This document shows, one piece after another, positions 38,976-54,108 of a DNA stretch of 64,000 nt. The position numbers and the translations under genes are program-made. The first letter of the stretch is position 1. Every line of letters starts with the position of its first letter. The DNA comes from Pavona decussata. Lineage: Eukaryota. The notes under the pieces were generated by a model. That model searched no databases and was not told the origin of the DNA. It saw only the letters and a program-made list of their open reading frames with translations. The stretch is taken from contig CDRNST010000028.1 in assembly GCA_977016875.1 (NCBI GenBank), positions 124,001-188,000 of the forward strand, given 5' to 3'.

Positions 38976-40304
38976 CGTCAGTTATATTCTAAATGGATTT
39001 ATATGAGCTTATTTACCTTACTTCATGGCACATTTTTGGAAACAAAATCGGTATATTCACATTTTTCATCAGTTGATGACAATAACGGGTGGCTTGTAGA
39101 AATAATCGAGGCAGGCAGACGATGCGATCAAGCCGGCTAATTGGATTCTACGGTGTCTGTGAGATAAAACGCTAGCTAGGATGGAGCCTGAAACACTGAG
39201 AAGACATGTATGTATCAGCCAATACCGATTTTAGCTCTAACTATGCTCAATGTGCGATTATTTGAAAGAGATTGACTCTTTAGATACGCTTTCTTGGAGG
39301 TAAATATTTGTATGAAAAGAGGGGAAACATCGGGAAATCTAGCTATTAATAGCTTAGTTAAACTAATCTTAACCCACTGATATCGCCAATTTTGTCATTT
39401 TTATTGTTAGGAAACATTCGTTGAATATTTCGTGCCTTTTCATGTTCAGTCAGAAGATTGAAACATTTTTTTTTTTTGCAACATGAATTTAGATGAAATC
39501 GACGAAATCGTTCAGGTGGTAATACATATTTGCTTCATACAAACAAACTATTCATTTGCCCAAAAATTTTATTCCATATTTTGAAGGTTGTGATATTCCT
39601 CTTCAATCTTATAGTAAGTTACATAGTTAGGTTGTTGGCCATTAGAGATATTTGGGTACAAAAAAGTCAAATTTGAGGTTCTCGTGAAAATGACTTAAAC
39701 AGCCTCTTACTTCAGGTTCAGGCAAATAACGAAATCGCAGGTACCGATTGAAAAAACACACTGTGCTACAAGCCTGGTAAATGGGGAATACAATTCAGTG
39801 GGTTTTATTCACAGATCACAATTACATTTGTCTAAACACTCAATTGAGTTTGGCTAATCAATATGCATAATTGGTGCCAAAATGGCCATTTTTCAGGTTT
39901 TACCTATAACTCTGGTAAAATGGAATATTTTGACTTGATGTTTAGCGCATGAATATGTTTATGACACTCAATCTTTCTGCCATGTTTGAGCCAAATCGGT
40001 GATTTGAGTATTATCACCTCCTGCCTGGTCCTATCGTGGACACGCACTTAAAAGGTTCCATTTTGCCTGCCAACATGTCGTGAGGCTATTTAACTTCCAA
40101 GTTCTTGAACCATATTTACTTTTACCTAGCTCAATCAGTCATTTTGCAAAATTTTATTTAAAATCATGTAATAAAACGTTGGTTGTAGAGGTTAGGCAAA
40201 TCATAATAAAATAAACAATTTCCACATCAACAGTATTAAACATGTACGAACGCATAATAAATTACGTTTGCAAACTAACCAATCTACGAACGTGGTCAAA
40301 TCAT

Positions 40305-41198
40305 TTAGTTTTCTTCAATAACAACATTTTTACAAGTTATCTTTCTTACTTTCTTTATAACTGCTACTCGTAGTTCACGAAGACGCCAGCAGTATAAAAA
40401 TGGATTTATTGACGAATTAGCAAATACCAAATTTGCTGTAAAGGACCACGCTTTCGGCACTAACTTGGTTTTAGCGACATCAATCTCACTGTAATAAATT
40501 CTACAAATGAACCAAGGAAAATAGCAAAGTAAAGTGCAAATATAAAATATAAAAGTGTTAACAGCAGTGCGCTTTAATGACACCACTCTCATATGATGTT
40601 CAGTGTCTATTTGCACTGCTTGTTGTTGAACATGAATGTGCAACTGATGCCGACGAACGATTCGATAAATACCAGTGTACGAGATGCTGGAGGTGATAGT
40701 ATAAAGGATTATTAACACATAGACAGCATGAAAATTTGAAGAGATATTAAGAAGTATAAGAGTCGAGAAAAGAACGTGAAGGAGCCAAATAATACTGATA
40801 GTAAAAACAACGCGAGGTGTAGTAACTACATTGTTATAAGTCATGTGATATTGAAGGGCCAAATATCGATCCACACTTATCACCGCCATTGTAGACAGAG
40901 AAATTCCGCATAAAGCAGTCGCCGTTGATCCTGATAAACGCATGAGGAAGTCAGCCGAGGAAAATTGTCTGGCGATATACAGTGGTTGTGCTATTAGGCC
41001 AACAGCAACATCTGAGAGAGCGAGACAAGACAGCAAAATAATGGAAGAAGACCGAAGGGAAGAAGTAGTAAAGATGGCTGCTAATACAAAGCTATTGCTT
41101 ATAATGGAAGTCAACATCAATGGAACATTGAAAGCACAGGTAACAATGGCAGTCAGAAACGAAGCATTAGTTGCGTTTTCATGTACTGATCCGTTCAT
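40305..41198 (-). CDS. Single-exon class A GPCR, expanded subfamily
   Basis: 297 aa; LALSD, DRY, CYFP, NPFLY. Confidence 0.95.
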   Translation of the reverse strand: MNGSVHENATNASFLTAIVTCAFNVPLMLTSIISNSFVLAAIFTTSSLRSSSIILLSCLALSDVAVGLIAQPLYIARQFSSADFLMRLSGSTATALCGISLSTMAVISVDRYLALQYHMTYNNVVTTPRVVFTISIIWLLHVLFSTLILLNISSNFHAVYVLIILYTITSSISYTGIYRIVRRHQLHIHVQQQAVQIDTEHHMRVVSLKRTAVNTFIFYICTLLCYFPWFICRIYYSEIDVAKTKLVPKAWSFTANLVFANSSINPFLYCWRLRELRVAVIKKVRKITCKNVVIEEN

Positions 41199-43578
41199 CC
41201 TCTGAACTAAGTTTCCTTCCGTTAGGTTAAAATTAGTTGAACGCCGTCAAAATTCTGAGACTTCCTTTCAAACCTGCTGTATTCTTCGACTTCAGGAAAC
41301 TGCCGGGTAAGCCAGTAAACACCACGTGATAACGAAACGATTTTCTTCCCGTATTAGTTTAGTTTGTCTGCTGCGAGAAACGTAATATGTTTAGCTGTGA
41401 AGTATGTCTTCGTCGCGATCGCTTAACTTGTAATAAATACGAAGTTTTAAAAACAAGCCGTGAAGAGATGAACAATATCAGCAGAAAGCACCTGTCATCT
41501 AACAAGTACATCATCCTTCAGTAGGAAATATGGAAATACAATGAGCAGTTGACAATTTTCACCTGTAACTTTTAAAATATTTTGCAAAGAAGAGTGACTG
41601 TTTATGTTATAAATGTTATTACAGGAAAACCCCACAAATAATCGCGCCTAACGATGTGTAGTTGGCTTGTTTTTATTTTAAGGTAAATTTTTGGTTATCC
41701 TTTGGTGCTGATATTAGCACTCCTGATCACTTTTAAAGCTGCCATCCCCATTTCTCCAGTAGGCTCAATATACAAATCCCTCGTAGAACATGAGGATACC
41801 GTTTACATTTATCTCGAACACAGCCGCATGCATTCATTAGTATGTTTGATTCTGACAAGGCCCTGTTTATCTATCTCGAAACTGACTCGTTTCCCTTAAA
41901 TGTTGTAATACAGGAGTAATTTACTTTGGCCTACCTGAACTTCCCACTATTTCAAATTATGCGCATATAAATTCGAAATTTTAACATCCCTCTCCTCAGA
42001 ATACCCTCCAGGGCATTTCAAAACTAGCGTTTTCTCAAACTTGCGCGACGCTGAAACTCTGGTTTTTTGGACAGGAAAAAACGTCCGTAAAAGTACTAAA
42101 AATAGGCCACCTAGCATTTTAGGAAAGCCAACAGCATCTTTTAAAGTCGGGGAATAACATTCCTTTCCCTATGATTTTTGGCAACTGTTTAAAATTTAAT
42201 TTCAGCTGAAGAATCCGACCATACTCGGAGACCATGGGCAGATTAAGTTGGGTCAGGAGGAAGTCAAAACTGTAAACCTACCAGTTTTGACTTCCTCTTG
42301 ACACAACAACCTGCCACTGGATCTCCGAGGATAGAATCTGATACCATTAAACCGTGTTATTTTACACAAATTCCCCTTTTAAAAGGATATAAAATGAAAT
42401 GGAAATGCCAGAAGCCCTTGAATTTCCCCCTTTATGACCTTCCAGCTTATTTCCAAGAAGTTTATTTTCTGCGGCTTTCGTTTTTCTCTTCTCATATCTA
42501 AAAATCATTGACAGACGTATTTGGCCTGTAATAGACCAATCTCGGCATATTAAAATTCGTACTTGGCTACGAGCTTAGAGGTGCAAAACAACAGAAATTA
42601 CTTTGGAGGCTCAGAGATGAATAATTAATGTTTTTCGTTTTTTATTCCCCTAAGCCTCGAAACCAAGCTAGAATTTTAATATATCCAGATTGCTTTATAA
42701 ACGAAAGGTAAAAGATTCAGCTTCTGCTAAACTCGAGGACGCGTAAGAGTCCCTCGAGGCGTCGCTTGGAACGACTCTAGCTTCTTGAGTGCTTAGCAAA
42801 ACCTCCAGGTGCATTCACACAACTCAATAGTACACGCTGATCGCATGAGGTCATTTACCATTTGTCCTATAACATATAATGACTATGAAATCTATTTGTT
42901 AAGTAATGGCGGAATCTTCACATTGGTTTGTCAGAAAGATGCAAAATTTCGATAAAAGAAACTAGATGTAGTTACAAATCTTTTCACCAGAGTCTGTCAA
43001 AGTACACCAAATATAAAGGACAGGACGAGCTGCCAGGCCAGGTTTCCTTTGTATGCGAGTTTACTTTTTTTTTTGTCCTAATTTTTTTTCTTTTTTTCTC
43101 TCTGTGACGCACTCCGGTAAAAACGTTTTTTGTTATATCGTCAGAGAAAGTATTAAAGCAAACGATTGAACCCACTTTGAATGCTGATTCGTTCTCCTCA
43201 AAATGGCTGTGACGTCGCCCCTTTAAAATTCCTTCTTAATTTTAAATCTCTTATTTTATACATTTATTTTTCGCAGATTATAGATAGAGGAGGTTGTTAC
43301 TTAACTTTCAAAAGGTTCCATTTTGTCTACCAATATGTCGTGAAGCTATTTGACTTTCATATTTTTGGACCATGTACCTTCACCTAGCTCAAGCAGTCAT
43401 ATTGCAATATTTTATCCTACATTATGTAATAAAACGTTGGTTGTACACGTTAGGCAAATCGCAGTAAAATATACAATTTCAACTTCAACGTATTAAGCAT
43501 GCGCGAAGGCATCTTAAATAATAAAATATGATAAATTACGTTTCTTAACTAACCCATCCACGAACGTGGTCAAATCAT

Positions 43579-44472
43579 TTAGTTTTCTTCAATGACAACG
43601 TTTTTACACTTTATCTTTCTTACTTTCTTTGTAACTGCTACTCGTAGTTCACGAAGACGCCAGCAGTACAAAAATGGATTTATCGACGAATTAGCAAATA
43701 CCAAAGTTACTGTAAATGACCACGCTTTCGGCACCAACTTGGTTTTAACGACATCAATCTCACTGTAATAAATTCTACAAACGAACCAAGGAAAATAACA
43801 AAGTAAAGTGCACATATAAAATATAAAAGTGTTAACAGCAGTGCGCTTTAATGACACCACTCTCATATGATGTTCAGTGTCTATTTGCAATGCTTGTTGT
43901 TGAACATGAATGTGCAACTGATGCCGACGAACGATTCGATAAATACCAGTGTACGAGATGCTGGCGGTGATAGTATAAAGGATTATTAACACATAGACAG
44001 CATAAAAATTTGAAGAGATATTAAGAAGTGTAAGAGTCGAGAAAAGAACGTGAAGAAGCCAAATAATACTGATGGTAAAAACAACGCGAGGTGTAGTAAC
44101 TACATTGTTATAAGTCATGTGATATTGAAGGGCCAAATATCGATCCACGCTTATCACCGCCATTGTAGATAGAGAAATTCCACATAAAGCAGTCGCCGTT
44201 GATCCCGATAAACGCATGAGGAAGTCAGCCGAGGAAAATTGTCTGGCGATATACAGTGGTTGTGCTATTAGGCCAACAGCAACATCTGAGAGAGCGAGAC
44301 ATGACAGCAAAATAATGGAAGGCGACCGGAGGGAAAAATTAGTAAAGATGGCTGCTAATACAAAGCTATTGCTTATAATGGAAGTCAACATCAATGGAAC
44401 ATTGAAAGCACAGGTAACAATGGCAGTCAGAAACGAAGCATTAGTTGCGTTTTCATGTACTGATCCGTTCAT
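43579..44472 (-). CDS. Single-exon class A GPCR, recent tandem duplicate of 40305-41198
   Basis: 297 aa; only about a dozen residue differences; flanks also duplicated (offset 3274 bp). Confidence 0.95.
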   Translation of the reverse strand: MNGSVHENATNASFLTAIVTCAFNVPLMLTSIISNSFVLAAIFTNFSLRSPSIILLSCLALSDVAVGLIAQPLYIARQFSSADFLMRLSGSTATALCGISLSTMAVISVDRYLALQYHMTYNNVVTTPRVVFTISIIWLLHVLFSTLTLLNISSNFYAVYVLIILYTITASISYTGIYRIVRRHQLHIHVQQQALQIDTEHHMRVVSLKRTAVNTFIFYMCTLLCYFPWFVCRIYYSEIDVVKTKLVPKAWSFTVTLVFANSSINPFLYCWRLRELRVAVTKKVRKIKCKNVVIEEN

Positions 44473-46307
44473 CCTCTGAACTAAGTTTCCTTCCGTAAGG
44501 TTAAAATTAGTTGAACGCCGTCAAAATTCTGAGAGTTCCTTTCAGACCTGCTGTATTCTTCGACTTCAGGAAACTGCCGGGTAAGCCAGTAAACACCACG
44601 TGATAACGAAACGATTTTCTTCACGTATTAGTTTAGTTTGTCTGCTACAAGAAACGTAATATGTTTAGCTGTGAAGTAATTCTTTGTCGCGATCGCTTAA
44701 CTTGTAATAAATAAGAAGTTTTTAAAAAAAAGCCGTGAAGAGATGAACAATATCAGCAGAAAGCACCTGGCATCTAGCAAATACATTATGCTCCAGTAGG
44801 AAATATGGAAATACAATAAGCAGTTGACAATTTTCACCTGTAACTTTTAAAATATTTTGAAAAGAAGAGTGACTGTGTCATAAATGTTATTACAAGAAAG
44901 GCCCACAAATAATCGTACCTAACGATGTATAGTTGGCTTGTTTTTATTTTAAGATAAATTTTTGGTTATCCTTTGGTGCTGATATTAGCACTCCTGATCA
45001 CTTTTAAAGCTGCCATCCCCAATTCTCCAGTAGGGTCAATATACAAATCCCTCGTAGAACATAAGGATACCGTTGACATTTATCTCGAACACAGCCGCAT
45101 GCGTTCATTAGTATGTTTGATTCTGACAAGGCCCTGTTTATCTATCTCGAAACTGACTTGTTTCCCTTGAATGTTGTAAAAGTACAGGAGTAATTTACTT
45201 TGCCCACCTGAACTTCCCAATATTTCGAATAAGCGCATATAAATTAAAAATTTTAACATCCCTCTCCTCAGGGTACCCTCCAGGGCATTTCAAAACTAGC
45301 GTTTTCTCAAACTTTCTCGACGTTGAAACTCTGGTATGTTTTTGTTTTGTTTTTTTTTGAAGAGGAAAAGACGTCCGTAAAAGTACTAAAAATAGGCCAC
45401 CTAGCATTTTAGGAAAGCCAACAGCATCTTTTAAAGTCGGGGAATAACATTCCTTTCCCTAAGATTTTTGGCAACTGTTTGAATTTTAATTTCAGCTGAA
45501 GAACCCAACAATACTCGGAGACCCATGGGCAGATTAAGTTGGGTCAGGAGGAAGTCAAAACTGTAAACTTACCTGGTTTGACTTCCTTTTAACACAACAA
45601 TCTGCCTCTGGGTTTCCGAGGATGAAATCAGACGCCATTAAACCGTGTTAGCTTACGCAAATGCGCCTTTTCAAAGGCCATAAAATGAAGTGGAAATGAA
45701 GGAAGCCCTTGAATTTCCCCCTTTTCAACCTTTCAGCTTATCCCAAGAAGTTTACACTCTACGGCCCTTGTCCTTCCCTTGTCATATTTAAAATACAATG
45801 ACAGAAACATTTGGCCTGTAATAGACCAATCCCGATTTATTAAAATTCATACTTGGCTACGAGGTAAGAGGTGCAAAACAACAGAAATTACCTTCAGCGG
45901 CTCAGAGATGAATAATTATGCGAGCGACTCTAGCTTCTTGAGTGCTTAGCAAAACCTCCCAAGTGCATTTACAACTCAAGGGTGTACGCTGATCGCATGA
46001 GCCATTTTCCATTTGTCCTATAACATATAATAAATATGAAACTTTAACGTTCCCCTCCCCCTCCCTTTCCCCCTTCCCGGGGTAGTCGGGGAATAACTTT
46101 CCGTCACCCTAAAATTTCCAGGAAATGTTTTTGAAAATTTTCAGCTAAAATGATCCGAACAACTGACTAGCTGGTTAACTGTGTTAGCTTACGCAAATTT
46201 GCTTTTAAAGGCCATATAATAATGTAGCAATGGTGGTGAACAAGCAACATTTTAAACTATTTTGGTTTAATGTTCCCGTCGTGTGCCCCTACAATCCCCC
46301 TCCTTTT

Positions 46308-46670
46308 TGCCTACTTTTCTTTCTGTGTATTCGTCAGTTCAGCACATCTTGCGATACTCGGGTTTCCTTGCTCGGTTTAAAACTAGGCAGATAAAGCAGA
46401 AGTTAGCAAGTGCTCTTTGTGTTTTAAAAGAAAATTGGGGGTAAACATGCATTTTTCAGAGATTATAAAGCTTCAATTTGAAAAAAAAAACGCCATACAT
46501 TGCTTTGTATTTTACTGCTTTTTAGAATAATTTTTGCTTAATTATCACCAAAAAAATGCCCTGCTACCCCGGATTTTCTTTCTGGATTTCAGTATCCCAT
46601 GCTTAAATCTGCTTTTCCCGCATAGTCATAAACTATGGAAAAATACTTCTGTATTAGGAGGCACCGTCCT
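46308..46670. mobile_element. Kolobok-like MITE remnant
   Basis: Right end taggaggcaccgtcct|taa; left end eroded, with a fuller form ggacggtgcctact at the paralogous site ~51870. Confidence 0.5.
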
Positions 46671-47661
46671 TAAGCCTCTCCCCAAGAAACCTATTTTCTG
46701 CGGCTCTTACCTTGAGTCTGTACTCGCACAGAGAACGTCAAAACGTGGTAAGAAAATTAGCCACGCTACTCGCCTGCAGCTCGTAGCGTACTTCCCGTTC
46801 TTCTCACCACGTTTTGTCTTCATCTGTGCGTTATCGGAGTACTATGCGTTATCGGAGTACAGACGCACCTCAAAATGAAATTTATTTGTGAAGTAATGGC
46901 AAAATCTAAACATTGGTATAATGGGGTTGACAGGCCTACGCGACTCTCATGTGCGTGTTTAGCCTAAATAAGAGTTTTGCCCTCACGGGTTATGTTTTCC
47001 AAAGAACACCCTTTTCTTTATGAAAAGAGCGGTGCTCCCGGTAAAATTTTCTTTTAGCGCTGGATTTTCTTCTTTTTAAATGCCATCTATGATTTGGAGG
47101 ATTTGCGCGATAGACACTGAACAAAGCTATGTGTTTAACTGTCGCATGTGTTGTAATTGATCTCAAAGGTCATTTTGACCTCTTGTTGTTACGTTTCCGT
47201 TTAGCGACTGTCGTTCTTATGCCGTTTGTGGCATTTAGTTTAGGCTTGGTATGGCTCATTTCAGTGCGTCTGGTGGCAGTATAGCCTCTCTTTTTATCGT
47301 TGTAAGGATAGGAGTTGAACCGTGTAATAACTATACATTATCTTGCAGCTTTTGTCAGATTGCCGGGCCCGGCTATTTGCTTTTGGTGCAAGATGCTGTG
47401 CTTCTTATCACGGTTATTTGTCCCTTGATCCGTTCTTAAGCATTGTAGCTTCTTTGAAAGCTATGCAATGCGTTAAATTGAGGGCTAAAGGCCGCTTAAG
47501 TTACGGCTGTGTGTTTTGTTGTCGCTCCGCTAAGCTCTGTAACTGTGAGGTTTGTGTTGCGGGAGCTTAGTATTTTCCTCCTGTGTTTACGTGCTCTGGC
47601 CAGGGGCTGCTTCTAGTCCTTCGGCCGTAAGTAAATTCTGTAGCATTTAAGGCAATGGTCA

Positions 47662-47709
47662 GGCAAGACCGCGGTTTCGATCCTAATCTTGTGGATCTCA
47701 TCAGTTGCC
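47662..47709 (-). ncRNA. Type I hammerhead ribozyme with minimal palindromic helix III
   Basis: Minus strand: GGCAA-CUGAUGA-GAUCC-acaagauua-GGAUC-GAAA-CCGCGG-UC^UUGCC. Core intact, helices I and II perfectly paired, GUC cleavage triplet. Confidence 0.93.
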
Positions 47710-47749
47710 GATTCTTCAGAAATGATAGAGATGAGTTCTCGGTATCATT

Positions 47750-48115
47750 TCAACAAACGCGCTCTCTTGTCAAATTATAAACCCATTGTTCGGATCGAAA
47801 ACCCTGCAATTCAATTGGCTCCTTGGTTTGAGCCAATCTGGTGGCTGCGAGTTCGATCCATGGTGGGGCTAAGCTTGACGCTGTGTTTTCTATGATGGCT
47901 AAAACGTTAAATTTTGTACATGAACTGTCGTTTTGTTCGCGGATAGGTGTTTCCGTAGAACTGTGCATATGTGTTGCAGCATATAGCTCACTATGGAGAC
48001 TGTATAAAGCTCTATACACCGCCAGGAGTGCGATTTTCGTCTTTGTTTTTTCGGAGTTCATGTACAGTATGTCTTTCACGACATGAGACGGGGCCTGTCT
48101 GTAATTAATCAACAT
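47750..48115 (-). CDS. Hypothetical 121-aa ORF inside the hammerhead element
   Basis: ATG-initiated, same polarity as the ribozyme, stops ~40 nt before it; no recognisable domain. Confidence 0.25.
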   Translation of the reverse strand: MLINYRQAPSHVVKDILYMNSEKTKTKIALLAVYRALYSLHSELYAATHMHSSTETPIREQNDSSCTKFNVLAIIENTASSLAPPWIELAATRLAQTKEPIELQGFRSEQWVYNLTRERVC

Positions 48116-48190
48116 GGCATAATGGGGTTGACAGGCCTACGCGACTCTCATGTGCGTGTTTAGCCTAAATAAGAGTTTTGCCCTCACGGG

Positions 48191-48730
48191 TTATGTTTTC
48201 CAAAGAACACCCTTTTCTTTATGAAAAGAGCGGTGCTCCCGGTAAAATTTTCTTTTAGCGCTGGATTTTCTTCTTTTTAAATGCCATCTAAGAGTCGAAA
48301 TAAGAACCTGAAAGAGCCAAATAATAATGATTAGGAAAAAAACACGAGATGTAGTAACTAAATTGTCATGAGTCATGTGATATTGAAGGGCTAAAAATCG
48401 ATCCACGCTTATCAGCGCCATTGTAGAGAGAGCAATTCCACAAAACACACTCCCCATTGTATCCCCTACACGCATGAGGAGGTCAGCCGAGGAAAATAGT
48501 CTTGCAATATACAGTGGTTGTGCTATTAGGCCAACAGCAACATCTGAGACAGCGAGATAAGGCAACAAAATAATGGAAGGCGACCGGAGGGAAGAAGTAG
48601 TAAAGATGGCTGCTAATACAAAGCTATTGCTGATAATGGCAGTCAACATTAATGGAACATTGAAAGCACAGGTAACAATGGCAGTCAGAAACGAAGCATT
48701 AGTTGCGTTTTCATGTACTGATCCGTTCAT
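48191..48730 (-). pseudogene. Truncated GPCR (TM1-TM4) fused in frame to ~32 insert-derived residues
   Basis: Homology ends at ..QVLISTL(R); the tail WHLKRRKSSAKRKFY.. comes from the terminal repeat of the insert. Confidence 0.9.
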
Positions 48731-50766
48731 CTTCTCAACCAAGTTTCCTTGCGTTAGGTTTAAAATTAGTTTTACGCCGTCAAAATTCTGAGTCTTCCTT
48801 TCAGACCTGCTGTATTCTTCCACTTTAGGAAACTGCCGGGTAAGCCAGTAAACACCACGTGGTAACCCGCAGCAAGGCTAAAACAACTGAAGAGGCTTAG
48901 CAAAATGGTTAAACAAAACTACACCCCCCCCCCCTCCCCCCGTCCCGTTACTTAAAGAAACAGAGTATTATGTATAGTTTGCTTGTTTTTACTTTAAATA
49001 ATTTTTTGGATATCCTTTGGTGCTGATCTTAGCACTCTCGTTCCCTTTTAAAGCTGCCATCCCCAATTCTTTATAAGGTTCAATATAAAAACATTGAAAA
49101 AACAAGCGACTCGTAGAACATAAGGATACCGTTTGCATTTACCTCGAACACAGCTGTGTTTACTAGTATGTTTGATTCTGACAAGGCCCTGTTTATCTAT
49201 CTCGAAACTGACTCGTTTCCCTTGAATGTTATAAAAGTACAGGAGTAATTTACTTTGGCCCACCTGGATTTCTCACTATTTCGAATAATTAATGCCCATG
49301 TAAATTCGAAACTTTAACATCCCTCTGCTCAGGGTTTCCTCCAGGGCATTTCAAAATTAGCGCTTTCTCAAACTTCCGCAACGCTACAACTCTAGTAATT
49401 TTCGTTTTCGGAGAGGAAAAGTCATCCGTAATACTACCAAAATTAGGCCTCCTAACATTTTCGGAAACCCAACAGCGGCTCGTAAATTCGGGGAATAACA
49501 TTCCTTTCCCTAAGATTTTCGGCAACTGATTAAATTTTAATTTCAGCTGAAGAATCAGACCATATACTCGGAGACCCATGGGCAGATTAAGTTTTGTCAG
49601 GAGGAAGTCAAAACTGTAAACTTACCCGCTTTGACTTCCTCTTGACACAACCATCTGCCTCTGGGTCTCCGAGGATAGAATTCGAGCCCATTAAACCGTG
49701 TTATTTTACACAAATTCCCCTTTTAAAAGGATATAAAATGAAATGGAAATGCAGGAATCCCTTCAATTTCCCCCTTTACGACCTTCCAGCTTATTCCCAA
49801 AAAGTTTATTTTCTGCGGCTCTTGTTTTTCTCTTCTTATATCTTAAAATCGTTGACAGAAATATTTGGCCTGTAATAGACCAATCTCGATATATTAAAAA
49901 TCATACTTGGCTACGAGCTAAGAGGTGCAAAACAACAGAAATTAACTTCAGAGGCTCAGAGATAAATAATTCTGTTTTTCGTTTATTATTCCCCTAAGCC
50001 TCGAAGCCAAGCTAGAATTTTAATATATCCAAATTGCTTTATGAACAAAAGGTAATTGATTCATCGTCTGCTCAGCTCAAAAGAAGCGTAAGAGTCGCTC
50101 GAGGCGACGCCTTGAGCGACTCTAGCTTCTCGAGTGCTTAGTAAAACATCCCAAGTGCATTTACAACTCAATAGTGCACGCTGATCGCATGAGCTATCTA
50201 CCATTTGTCCTATAACATATAATAAATCAGAAACTTCAAAGTTCTCTTCCCCCTCCCCCTCCCGGGGCAGTCGCGGGTAATCACATTCCGTCGCCCTAAA
50301 ATTTCCAGCAAATGTTTTGAAAATTTTCAGCTAAAGAATCCGAACAACTGACTAACTAGCTAACTGTGTAAGCTTGCACCAATTTGCTTTTAAAGGCCAT
50401 AAAATAATGTAAGAATAGTGGTAATGTTTAAATATAGAAGGTGGGCTGGCACTAAAGCTTGAGCAAAGCAATTGATTAATCATTAAAAAAGGAAAAGAAT
50501 AAATAAATAAATGATTAAATAAATACCAGTTGAAAACTCATGAACAGTAAGACTGTAAGATGTTTAACTTGACTTTTGTTTTGAAACGTTTTGAGTGGTT
50601 GACAATTTTACCTGAAACCGTTCAATTATTTTGCAAAAAGAATGACTGTTTATGTCATAATTATTATAACAGGAAAGGCCCACAAATAATCGAAAATTTT
50701 CAGCTGAAGAATCCGAACAACTGACTAACTAGCTCATTGTGTAAGCTTACACAAATTTGCTTTTAA

Positions 50767-51764
50767 CCCATTTCATCCCATGCAACAAGACATATTTGCG
50801 ACGAAAACACCGTTCTCAGTTGCTTCTATGAATTGCTCCTTGTTAAACTTAAGCTACAACGTCATGATAATGTGTGAATGGCACCAGCTGATGTATACTG
50901 CCATCATCAAACCCAGCAAACCGACTACACCTCCCGATTTTCGCTGCATATCACCGTTCGTTTGGCAACAAAGTCCTAAATTCCAATTTTTCGGCTAAAT
51001 AATAACACGAAAAATTACACGTATTTATCATCAATTTTTAATCCAAATAATTTGTTCAAAAAGGAAAACTCTACATTTACAGCAAACCTCAAGGTCAGAC
51101 CTTGGTATCTGACTTGAAGTTTTCCTCTCAACGCTTTCGGAGGGCTATACTTCAGCCATTTTATCAGACCCAGCCTTGCGTATCTCACGTTGCCTCGTTT
51201 ACACCCGAAAAGAATTCTGGGTAATTCAGCCATAGCGCGGGCGTATAACTCCTGCTCTTTCCATTTCATAGTTTTTTATATAAGTGTCGAGCAACCCAGT
51301 ACTACCAGCAAAATTTCGAATCCATTGAATATTTTACTACTCCAAACTCGCCTAAATTGCCTTGGTAGGTCCTGGAATCCAGCCACAACTGAACGGCCAG
51401 AGAGACAACTTCACTCGTTGGCCTCCATGTCTGCTATACAGCATGTTTGGCGACTCAGTCAGCATGAAACCACCTCTCACCTCTGTTTTCTTTCAGAGGA
51501 TTGCCTCTACCCACATTCCAGCTTAATGATACCAGAATGGTGGCTTCTGCAGAGGAAAATAGCTCGAAAAATACTTATAAAGCGATGATTTTACCAGATT
51601 CGTGCTTGTGCACTCGCTTGAACAAACAACAACCGTCACTTGCATCACGTGACAATTTAGCCTGAGCCCACAGTTTCCTTAGACCGCAGATATTTTTATT
51701 TCATCTCCATTTATGGAGAAATTAAGTGGTTCAGACTATTTATTGCCAAAAAGTCATTAAAGGA
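50767..51764. mobile_element. ~1-kb TTAA insertion, piggyBac-like ends (CCC..GGA), non-coding
   Basis: tttgctt-ttaa|ccc...agga|ttaa-aggccataaaat; empty paralog tttgcttttaaaggccataaaat at ~50383. Confidence 0.8.
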
Positions 51765-51899
51765 TTAAAGGCCATAAAATAATGTAGGAATAGTGGTAAA
51801 CAGGCAACAGCTTAAACTATTTTAATTTAATGTTCTTGTCGGGTGCCCCTCAATCTCCCTCCTTTTTATGGACGGTGCCTACTTTTGTTTCTTAGCATA

Positions 51900-52480
51900 C
51901 GTTCTACGTAATATTTATTGTTCGGATGGCAAACTAATACATTGTTTGACTCTCTGAGTGCATGATTTTAAATTAATTGGCTGAAAATATTAACGATTAG
52001 ATTGCCTAAAACTTAAAATTCGTTATGACTGAACTTTAAAGAGTTTATGTCAAGGTAATTCCTTAGTTTTATGAAATATTTATTGTTTTGCTGTCAAACT
52101 AATACATTGTTTGACTATCCAAGTGATTTTAAATTGGTTGAAGATATTAACGATTAAATTGCCTAAAACACAAATTCGTTATGACTGAAATTCAAGAGTT
52201 TATGTCCAGGTAATTCCTTACTTTTATGAAATATTTATCGTTTTGCTGTCAAACTAATACATTGTTTGACTATCTGAAGGATTTTAAATTGGTTGAAAAT
52301 ATTAACGATTAGATTGCCTAAAATGCAAATTCGTTATGACTGAACTTTAAGAGTTTATGTCAAGATACCAACTCCTAAGATATACATGATATTTATTGTT
52401 TTGCTGTCAAACTAATACACTGTTTGGCTATCTGAGTGAATTAAATTGGTTGAAAAATATTAATGATTGATTGGATTGCA
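51900..52480. repeat. Tandem repeat, ~4 units of ~155-165 bp
   Basis: atatttattgttttgctgtcaaactaatac recurs at ~51911, 52076, 52231 and 52390. Confidence 0.85.
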
Positions 52481-53061
52481 TTGAAATTTTGAAAATATTA
52501 ATTTAACATTCGTTGCCAGATGGGACTATAACGTGGCCCGTCCTTGGCGCCTGACTGGGCCTCTCCGAGATAATATACCAGATAAACTGTATAGGGAATT
52601 GTAACTTAAGATTTAATTAATGGAAAAATGTTTTCCAAATAACAAAGATATTGTTACATAAGAGATAAGATGAAACGTGACTTACAACTTAAGATAATAC
52701 ACGTGAATCGGCATGAAACATAAAAATCCTATTTGTGCCAAATGTTCCATTAATTTACTGATCTATTTTTCTCATATTATGGAGGTGGTTGTTAATTAAC
52801 TTTTAATAGGTTCCATTTTGTCTGCCAACATGACGTGACATCAACTTTCAAGTTCTTGAATCATATGTACCTTTACCTAGCTCAATCAGTCATATTGCAA
52901 AATTTTATTTAAAATAATGCAATAAAACGTTGGTTGTGGAGGTTAGGCAAATCAAATTTTTACATCAACAGTATTAAACATGTACGAACGCATCTTAAAT
53001 AATATGATAAAATAAAAATTACGTTTGCAAACTAACCCATCCACGAACGTGGTCAAATCAT

Positions 53062-53955
53062 TTAGTTTTCTTCAATGACAACGTTTTTACAAGTTATCTT
53101 TCTTACTTCCTTTATAACTGCTACTCGTAGTTCACGAAGACGCCAGCAGTACAGAAATGGATTTATCGACGAATTAGCAAATACCAAAGTTACTGTAAAT
53201 GACCACGCTTTCGGCACTAACTTGGTTTTAGCAACATCAATCTCACTGTAATAAATTCTACAAATGAACCAAGGTAAATAACAAAGCAACGTGCAAATGA
53301 AAAATATAAAAGTGTTAACAGCAGTGCGCTTTAATGACAACACTCTCAAATGATGTTCAGTGTCCATTTGCACTGCCTGTTGTTGAGTATGAATAAGCAA
53401 CTGATGCCGACGAACAACTCGATAAACACCAGTGTACGAAATGCTGCCAGCGATAGTGTAAAGGATGATAAACACATAGACAGCATAAAAATTTGAAGAG
53501 ATATTAAGAAGTCTAAGAGTCGAGATGAGAACATGAAAGAGCCAAATAATAATGATAGTAAAAACAACACGACATGTAGTAACTATATTGTTATAAGTCA
53601 TGTGATATTGAAGGGCCAAATATCGATCCACGCTTATCACGGCCATTGTAGACAGAGAAATTCCACATAACACAGTCGCCATTGTTCCTGATAAACGTAC
53701 GAGGAAGTCAGATAAGGAAAATTGTCTGGCGATATACAGTGGTTGTACTATTAGGCCAACAGCAACATCTGAGACAGCGAGACAAGACAGTAAAATAATG
53801 GAAGGCGACCGAAGGGAAGAATTAGTAAAGATGGCTGCTAATACAAAGCTATTGCTAATAATGGAAGTCAACATCAATGGAACATTGAAAGCACAGGTAA
53901 CAATGGCGGTCAGAAACGAAGCATTAGTTGCGTTTTCATGTACTGATCCGTTCAT
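53062..53955 (-). CDS. Single-exon class A GPCR, expanded subfamily
   Basis: ATG at 53955; LAVSD, DRY, CYLP, NPFLY. Confidence 0.95.
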   Translation of the reverse strand: MNGSVHENATNASFLTAIVTCAFNVPLMLTSIISNSFVLAAIFTNSSLRSPSIILLSCLAVSDVAVGLIVQPLYIARQFSLSDFLVRLSGTMATVLCGISLSTMAVISVDRYLALQYHMTYNNIVTTCRVVFTIIIIWLFHVLISTLRLLNISSNFYAVYVFIILYTIAGSISYTGVYRVVRRHQLLIHTQQQAVQMDTEHHLRVLSLKRTAVNTFIFFICTLLCYLPWFICRIYYSEIDVAKTKLVPKAWSFTVTLVFANSSINPFLYCWRLRELRVAVIKEVRKITCKNVVIEEN

Positions 53956-54108
53956 TTTCTGAATATTCTTCAAACAAGTTTAATTCCGTTAGGTTTGAAT
54001 TAGTTGAACGCAGTCAAAATTCTGAGAGTTCCTTTCAGACTTGCTGTATTCTTCGACTTTAGGAAAGCCGAGTAAGCCAGTAAACACCAAGTGCTTACGA
54101 AACGATTT

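Follow-up and report, generated by a model that had tools for sequence, protein, structure and literature searches.

The window analysed here, a stretch of 64,000 nt of Pavona decussata DNA, carries on its minus strand at 47661-47710 a predicted hammerhead motif that, judged by its sequence, is a genuine minimal type I hammerhead. We consider it likely that the motif sits in a 1201-nt non-coding, retrozyme-like retroelement that is a non-autonomous passenger of Penelope-like elements (PLEs), with cleavage as a dimer and copying of the PLE type. This mobile-element setting, which the original prediction of the hammerhead had missed, is the real explanation of the motif.

The hammerhead motif

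The bounds of the motif were set by direct reading of the sequence, by the Rfam model RF00163 and by the copies found in the genome. On the minus strand, helix I is formed by GGCAA (47709-47705) paired with UUGCC (47666-47662) over 5 bp and is followed by the core CUGAUGA (47704-47698, with N7 at 47700), by helix II (47697-47679), in which GAUCC (47697-47693) pairs with GGAUC (47683-47679) over 5 bp and encloses a 9-nt loop (ACAAGAUUA, 47692-47684), and by GAAA (47678-47675). The CCGCGG of helix III (47674-47669) and its flanking A and U make up the 8-nt palindrome ACCGCGGU (47675-47668), which is its own reverse complement and can pair between two motifs. U16.1 is at 47668 and C17 at 47667, and the hammerhead rule therefore places the predicted cut at 47667|47666. 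Direct reading finds all the invariant hammerhead nucleotides intact and the G10.1-C11.1 and A15.1-U16.1 pairs both present. Every part of the type I core (C3 U4 G5 A6 N7 G8 A9, G12 A13 A14, A15.1-U16.1 and H17) is in place, and the three helices are arranged as in type I, with helix I open at its ends, helix II closed by a loop and helix III closed and palindromic. The intact CUGAUGA and GAAA cores, the 5-bp helices I and II, the 9-nt loop and the GUC cut site are as the original prediction had described them.

The Rfam Hammerhead_1 search that had been suggested as a check gave a mixed result: all 45 positions of the model (RF00163) were aligned to 47661-47710 of the minus strand, with E-values of 0.0015 on 801 nt and 0.003 on 1601 nt, at a score of 24.8 bits that is under the gathering score of 34 bits. 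Consequently, the scan of the whole window at the gathering level returned no match. The motif falls outside RF00163 on the score threshold only, and the shortfall is due to the long loop 2 and to sequence differences in the helices; the core is not to blame. A simple hammerhead descriptor matched the window once, vs 0.05 matches expected from shuffles. The Rfam search found no second ribozyme at the unit junction, elsewhere in the unit or on the other strand.

The insertion, its target and its family

Comparison of the window with itself delimits the hammerhead-bearing repeat as a minus-strand insertion of 1385 nt at 46909-48293, for which we use element coordinates q1 (48293) to q1385 (46909). 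The first 179-184 nt of the insertion are a direct repeat of its last 179-184 nt, with 98-99% identity and a spacing of 1201. The insertion thus consists of one 1201-nt unit (46914-48114, q180-1380) and a 179-nt partial tandem copy upstream of it, or pseudo-LTR (48115-48293, q1-179), whose twin is the 3' end of the unit (46914-47092). The period of 1201 is close to that of a tandem array on C181 (~1198), and the full unit is taken as q180-1380 because copies with 5' ends at q1-179 share the identical junction sequence. No ORF longer than 121 aa is found in the insertion, and the 121-aa ORF has no significant Pfam match.

The target is a rhodopsin-type GPCR paralog on the same strand as the element. 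Its N-terminal half is encoded by an ORF at 48191-48823 of the minus strand, which matches Pfam 7tm_1 (E 4e-15, profile positions 2-127 of 260) and reads in frame into the element; this ORF belongs to the target gene rather than to the element. Self-comparison shows the homology to the other GPCR paralogs resuming at 48289, and the element interrupts one unit in a tandem array of ~3.27-kb paralogs and truncates the gene. About 680 nt of the GPCR unit are absent where the element is inserted, which indicates that the insertion was accompanied by a deletion or replacement. Tandem and dispersed ~3.27-kb units of this GPCR type occupy 40092-54100, 23860-30425, 14267-14773 and 3290-3631 of the window, and a further tandem repeat of ~155-165 nt, with 3-4 copies of 61-92% identity, lies between two of them at 51898-52503.

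A search of the genome (602 Mb) with the element gave 703 first-look candidates and 60 scored matches of 89-100% identity. At two or fewer mismatches, the genome has 127 matches (58 of them exact) to the 33-nt stretch that runs from helix II to the cut and 113 to the 29 nt after it, vs none for the reversed control in either case. With 72 further copies retrieved, identity to the window copy differs by subfamily, from 99% to as little as ~73%. Most of the copies seen consist of a single unit, or of 1.15 units that include a pseudo-LTR, rather than of long arrays. Two arrays carry an exact hammerhead in each unit, one on C181 with at least 4 units and a period of ~1198, and one on C46 with 4 units and a period of ~1165. 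All units of the C46 array (G000:C46:4100772-4105881, copies L007 and L010-L012) are without the same 36 nt at the junction, where the 3' end GCCA is joined to q216; this common gap suggests that the array expanded from a single variant unit instead of arising through independent insertions.

The two ends of the copies behave differently. The 5' ends vary from q1 to q1130, as expected of 5' truncation, and the upstream partial copies are of differing length in L013-L023. The 3' ends of independent copies are at q1376, q1379-1381 or q1385 (...CCCCAUUAU, GCCA and UGUU, respectively), and across ~30 copy 3' junctions the flanks are unrelated and without poly(A). A long hairpin (48077-48158, q136-217, -30.1 kcal/mol) is predicted across the unit junction, formed by the final 45 nt of one unit together with the initial 38 nt of the unit that follows, and the insertion 3' ends (q1376/1380/1385, equivalent to q175/179/184) fall in its apical loop. 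At this locus the 3' end of the insertion (46909-46957) likewise holds only the 5' arm and loop of that hairpin and no poly(A). Copies L021, L009 and L036 are 5'-truncated and arranged head-to-head in inverted orientation. No consistent target-site duplication was found at 26 junction pairs, some of which show filler or microhomology. The tandem arrays, the 3' ends fixed in a hairpin loop, the 5' truncation and the head-to-head inverted copies together point to PLE-type retrotransposition. Since the only complete junction hairpin of the window copy is near its 5' end, we infer that this insertion is a dead-end product.

Two apparent truncation points were rejected: a 5' end at q680 on C176, where the copy is interrupted, and a cluster at q467-470, which mostly represents a subfamily with another 5' module. 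In that older subfamily (L031, L034, L059 and L070), homology to the window copy is lost at q469-470 and replaced by a different upstream sequence that its members share; by sequence comparison, this is the second time that the family has exchanged its 5' module.

The hammerhead is unchanged in all subfamilies (73-99% identity) except for a few deletions of helix II and for scattered changes confined to single copies, many of the latter being CG-dinucleotide transitions (C-to-T or G-to-A). N7 is the one hammerhead core position that is free to vary, and it is also the sole position of the 50-nt motif that changes at the subfamily level, being U in the youngest subfamily, to which the window copy belongs, A in most of the older ones and C in a few. 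Comparison with the most divergent subfamily shows 96 fixed differences over 876 positions, from which ~5.5 would be expected in the 50-nt motif; the motif has 1. The motif lies within a conserved block (q541-780), neighbouring blocks are equally conserved, and its conservation is only moderately above the element average. No base-pair covariation was found in the hammerhead stems within the family, as the stems do not vary. The conservation of the motif is supportive of, though not strong evidence for, retention of the ribozyme.

Copy boundaries at the predicted cut and predicted folds

In element coordinates the predicted cut is q627|628, and several copies begin at or just after it. Homology is lost exactly at q628 in L047, and copies L009, L021, L101 and L100 start at q631-633, q634, q635 and q637, respectively. 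A contig from a true RNA-seq library joins the 3' end of the element through 8 other letters to q629. In a list compiled by hand from copies gathered in two ways, with BLAST boundaries good to a few nt, six genomic 5' boundaries fall in the 11 nt of q627-637 vs ~0.4 expected from ~32 independent truncation points over ~950 nt. The 35 nt before the 5' end of L047 (G000:C20:3375323) hold a partial, imperfect repeat of the first letters of the copy (CCUGACCAUUG...), which may be the trace of slippage or re-copying at a template end. A second concentration of 5' ends was noticed post hoc: five copies with unrelated flanks (L028, L030, L049, L054 and G000:C259:16226) start within 7 nt, at q510-516 (window 47778-47784), at a TATA-like UUUAUAAU ~115 nt upstream of the hammerhead cut. 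This hot spot, which might mark a site where transcription starts or where reverse transcriptase stops, means that the 5' ends are not uniform.

The predicted cut is also the joint at which a chimeric family, family B, departs from the element. Its members (L039, L041-L044, L048, L061 and L102) are dispersed on at least 8 contigs and also form arrays (G000:C1:1026553-1029301, period 1360); they are 96% identical to q627-1324 and carry unrelated sequence upstream, joined at q627/628. Read by eye and folded, this upstream module has its own hammerhead of the same design, with CUGACGA, a 5-bp helix II, GAAA, the 8-nt palindrome ACUGCAGU and GUC followed by UUGC, so that its predicted cut is 15 nt before the junction with the sequence shared with the element. 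A copy on C48 (L050/L051) starts exactly at this second predicted cut, separated by only ~8 nt from the 3' end of the copy before it. Rfam searches of the family B and PLE loci returned no match at E up to 0.1. Read from sequence, the copy boundaries at the predicted cuts are indirect evidence of cleavage in vivo.

ViennaRNA folding favours the action of two motifs. The predicted minimum-energy fold of the 50-nt monomer (-13.8 kcal/mol) is not catalytic, and the catalytic fold is at -9.2 kcal/mol. For two copies, the predicted minimum is a double hammerhead, joined through an intermolecular helix III of 8 bp, at -36.3 kcal/mol vs 2 x -13.8 kcal/mol for the monomers, and a pair of family B motifs is also predicted to form a double hammerhead (-30.9 kcal/mol). 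Both palindromes (ACCGCGGU and ACUGCAGU) are perfect despite their different sequences. Such predicted folding agrees with the published short palindromic helix III hammerheads of PLEs and amphibians, which are reported to be active as dimers (PMC4209133, PMC7229834), and the background given with the original prediction is in line with the same reports.

From that background it had been suggested that the motif, as a single copy, may cleave poorly alone but efficiently in multimeric transcripts, with release of unit-length monomers. The motif is indeed single within the window, but it has hundreds of family copies genome-wide. The dimer part of the suggestion is favoured by the predicted fold and by the existence of tandem arrays (C181 and C46), but no such array is present at this locus, and release of unit-length RNA does not apply here, as the locus holds 1.15 units with one ribozyme. 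At most, the ribozyme of this locus could make one cut in a transcript that reads through from the disrupted GPCR gene. Poor cleavage alone is not established, because a 2-bp helix III with a tetraloop has been likened to the helix III of invertebrate hammerheads, and most hammerheads of invertebrate retrozymes are reported to self-cleave efficiently (PMC7229834). By this analogy a single motif could cut efficiently through a helix III of two base pairs (A-U and C-G) closed by the tetraloop CGCG, with no need of a dimer, and the copies that start at the cut are silent on whether one or two motifs acted. We nevertheless think that this is unlikely to be how the motif works: the catalytic fold of the monomer is predicted to be 4.6 kcal/mol above its minimum, whereas the double hammerhead is itself the predicted minimum of the dimer; in each of the two unrelated hammerheads the central four letters (CGCG and UGCA) form a palindrome, which a hairpin loop does not require; and no contacts between loop 1 and loop 2 are evident in the motif.

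We propose that in multi-unit transcripts two hammerheads would form a double hammerhead through ACCGCGGU and be cut after C17, and that a PLE reverse transcriptase would start inside the junction hairpin and copy the RNA into a nicked target. Copying of uncut, multimeric or re-circularised RNA would then yield copies longer than one unit, as at this locus, copying of cut RNA would run off at the new 5' end and yield copies starting at the cut site, and template switching at that new end would yield chimeric families. Because the junction hairpin exists only in RNA that spans a junction, the fully competent template would be multimeric or circular. It is possible, and we put it forward only tentatively, that the genomic copies are a fossil record of hammerhead cleavage in vivo, that cut RNAs have served as PLE templates, that a switch created family B and that only multimeric or re-circularised RNA is fully competent for transposition.

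The hammerhead could instead be an inherited passenger motif that is inactive in vivo, with mobility independent of cutting and with the nearby 5' ends produced by stalling of reverse transcriptase at structure. For a vertebrate PLE, hammerhead cleavage was found to be dispensable for insertion in vitro, where hammerhead mutants had no effect; none of the reads terminated at the cut, and RNA ends produced by cleavage were not seen in vivo (PMC11167929). Naiad PLEs also thrive without hammerheads (PMC8557442). Further 5' ends lie inside the motif, at q588, 595, 603, 612 and 618. Stalling, however, would stop synthesis 3' of the structure and not at C17|U, and the exact predicted nucleotide is a breakpoint in two different hammerheads (in L047, at the family B junction and in L050/L051), so that stalling is hard to invoke. 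In addition, the core has been retained through subfamily turnover with N7 alone changing, and family B swapped its 5' module and yet has an intact hammerhead again. An inactive passenger therefore appears improbable to us.

It is very improbable that the insertion derives from a viroid-like or delta-like RNA, a ribozyme-bearing circle with autonomous replication, that became integrated as a DNA copy. Such an origin would account for terminal redundancy beyond one unit and for a highly structured RNA, but the unit has one ribozyme of one polarity, the Rfam search having given no other on either strand, and no ORF above 121 aa, and its hundreds of genomic copies bear the marks of retrotransposition, namely 5' truncation, a 3' end that is fixed and copies in inverted pairs. 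The Rfam score under the gathering threshold might suggest that the motif resembles the hammerhead consensus by chance, but this is already refuted by the family data, given 0.05 matches expected per window, 127 family copies vs none for the reversed control, conservation of the motif across subfamilies and the presence in the genome of type I hammerheads above the Rfam threshold.

Penelope-like elements, known systems and significance

The genome contains 933 GIY-YIG candidates, of which 150 are over the Pfam cut-off, with open frames of up to 1041 aa and many inverted pairs. Ten GIY-YIG PLE loci, all of one family, share no sequence with the element, and no hammerhead of the type found in the element was detected near any of the 150 best GIY-YIG matches. 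The module specific to family B weakly matches one of the ten loci (L105), which was rejected as a partner because the match is in non-coding, decayed sequence. In all ten loci (L103-L112), CUGAAGA, a GC-rich hairpin and GAAAUAUAG are found ~200-500 nt 3' of the endonuclease domain. In L104, GCUAUAUA is present in the upstream flank, by which the putative hammerhead of these loci looks open at helix III and not of type I. Across the genome, 50 of 74 scored candidates, from 82,792 first-look candidates, are type I hammerheads above the Rfam threshold. Type I hammerheads that score 39.4 bits, above this threshold, also form inverted pairs with a spacing of 280-490 nt (G000:C8:760893/761378, C19:942334/942721, C44:356323/356605 and C47:1929663/1929954), which is the arrangement described for truncated PLEs.

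The stretch or part of it is present in 19 public runs, all as assembled contigs, in which RNA ends, strand and circles are not visible. When aligned to 46700-48500, contigs from four runs of RNA or probable RNA cover the element and leave the GPCR flank (48286-48500) almost bare; the depth profile reflects the number of subfamilies that map rather than RNA processing, and DNA carry-over is possible. Most of the contig depth has A at N7, and one contig shows a 1201-nt head-to-tail joint. The coverage is compatible with expression of the family.

Among known systems, the class of retrozymes and non-autonomous PLE derivatives goes back to reports of 2014-2020, and its tie to PLEs is drawn again in a recent preprint (Li et al., 2026, 10.64898/2026.07.22.740005). 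Animal non-LTR retrozymes (Cervera and de la Pena, 2020, PMC7229834; Li et al., 2026) resemble the element in being non-coding, with a type I hammerhead in each unit, in occurring as tandem arrays and dispersed monomers, in their tie to PLEs, in the absence of an LTR, a primer-binding site and a polypurine tract, and in a GC content of <50%. They differ in unit size, which is 170-400 nt (PMC7229834) or 51-972 bp (the 2026 preprint) vs 1201 nt, and in forming long arrays, whereas the element, known here from DNA copies and contigs, is mostly found as single or 1.15-unit copies.

The minimal hammerheads in PLE pseudo-LTRs (Cervera and de la Pena, 2014, PMC4209133) share with the motif a short helix I, a palindromic helix III suited to dimers and the lack of evident loop-loop contacts; their helix II is of 6-8 bp vs 5 bp with a 9-nt loop in the motif. 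Like the element, PLEs have pseudo-LTRs, 5' truncation and inverted copies (PMC4209133), and such marks are listed as PLE hallmarks in PMC8557442. Unlike PLEs, the element has no RT/GIY-YIG ORF in its unit (PMC4209133). A PLE reverse transcriptase was found to start at adjacent sites within an internal stem-loop of a multi-copy RNA (Frangieh et al., 2024, PMC11167929), and the insertion 3' ends of the element likewise lie at adjacent sites in a stem-loop of this kind, with target homology unneeded in both. The 3' ends spread over 4-9 nt in the element vs a 30-40 nt tail in that system, in which no use of cut RNA was seen, whereas some genomic copies here start at the predicted cut.

The hammerheads of newt satellite 2 and Schistosoma Sm-alpha, which are the basis of RF00163, share the type I topology of the motif. 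The helix III of RF00163 is drawn as a loopless 4 bp (ACGCGCGU), a palindrome that works in dimers, which is a further likeness; helix II and its loop are different, and the motif scores 24.8 bits vs the cut-off of 34. Plant LTR retrozymes (PMC4918200) are also non-autonomous and processed by hammerheads, with RNAs of 600-1000 nt for which circular-RNA movement is proposed, but they have type III hammerheads in true LTRs, a primer-binding site and a polypurine tract and are moved by Ty3-gypsy elements.

In the features that were tested, the element thus conforms to an animal non-LTR retrozyme or a non-autonomous PLE derivative, and it is a good new example of a class that is already known. It is ordinary for a marine invertebrate genome, and the insertion is an example of truncation of a gene, here a GPCR paralog, by such an element. 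The copy boundaries at the cut site, the junction hairpin and the swapped hammerhead module add modestly to what is known of the class. If the genomic copies are indeed a record of cleavage in vivo, the family would represent a 1.2-kb circular-RNA retrozyme, above the unit sizes of the animal retrozymes in the papers compared here (51-972 bp), and would reveal a role for PLE-type hammerheads that was not found in vitro. For the role of hammerheads in PLEs and their passengers, the family provides a tractable case, being a young, many-copy element with an intact ribozyme, a defined stem-loop at the insertion end and 5' boundaries on the predicted cut, both in genomic copies and in a chimeric sister family.
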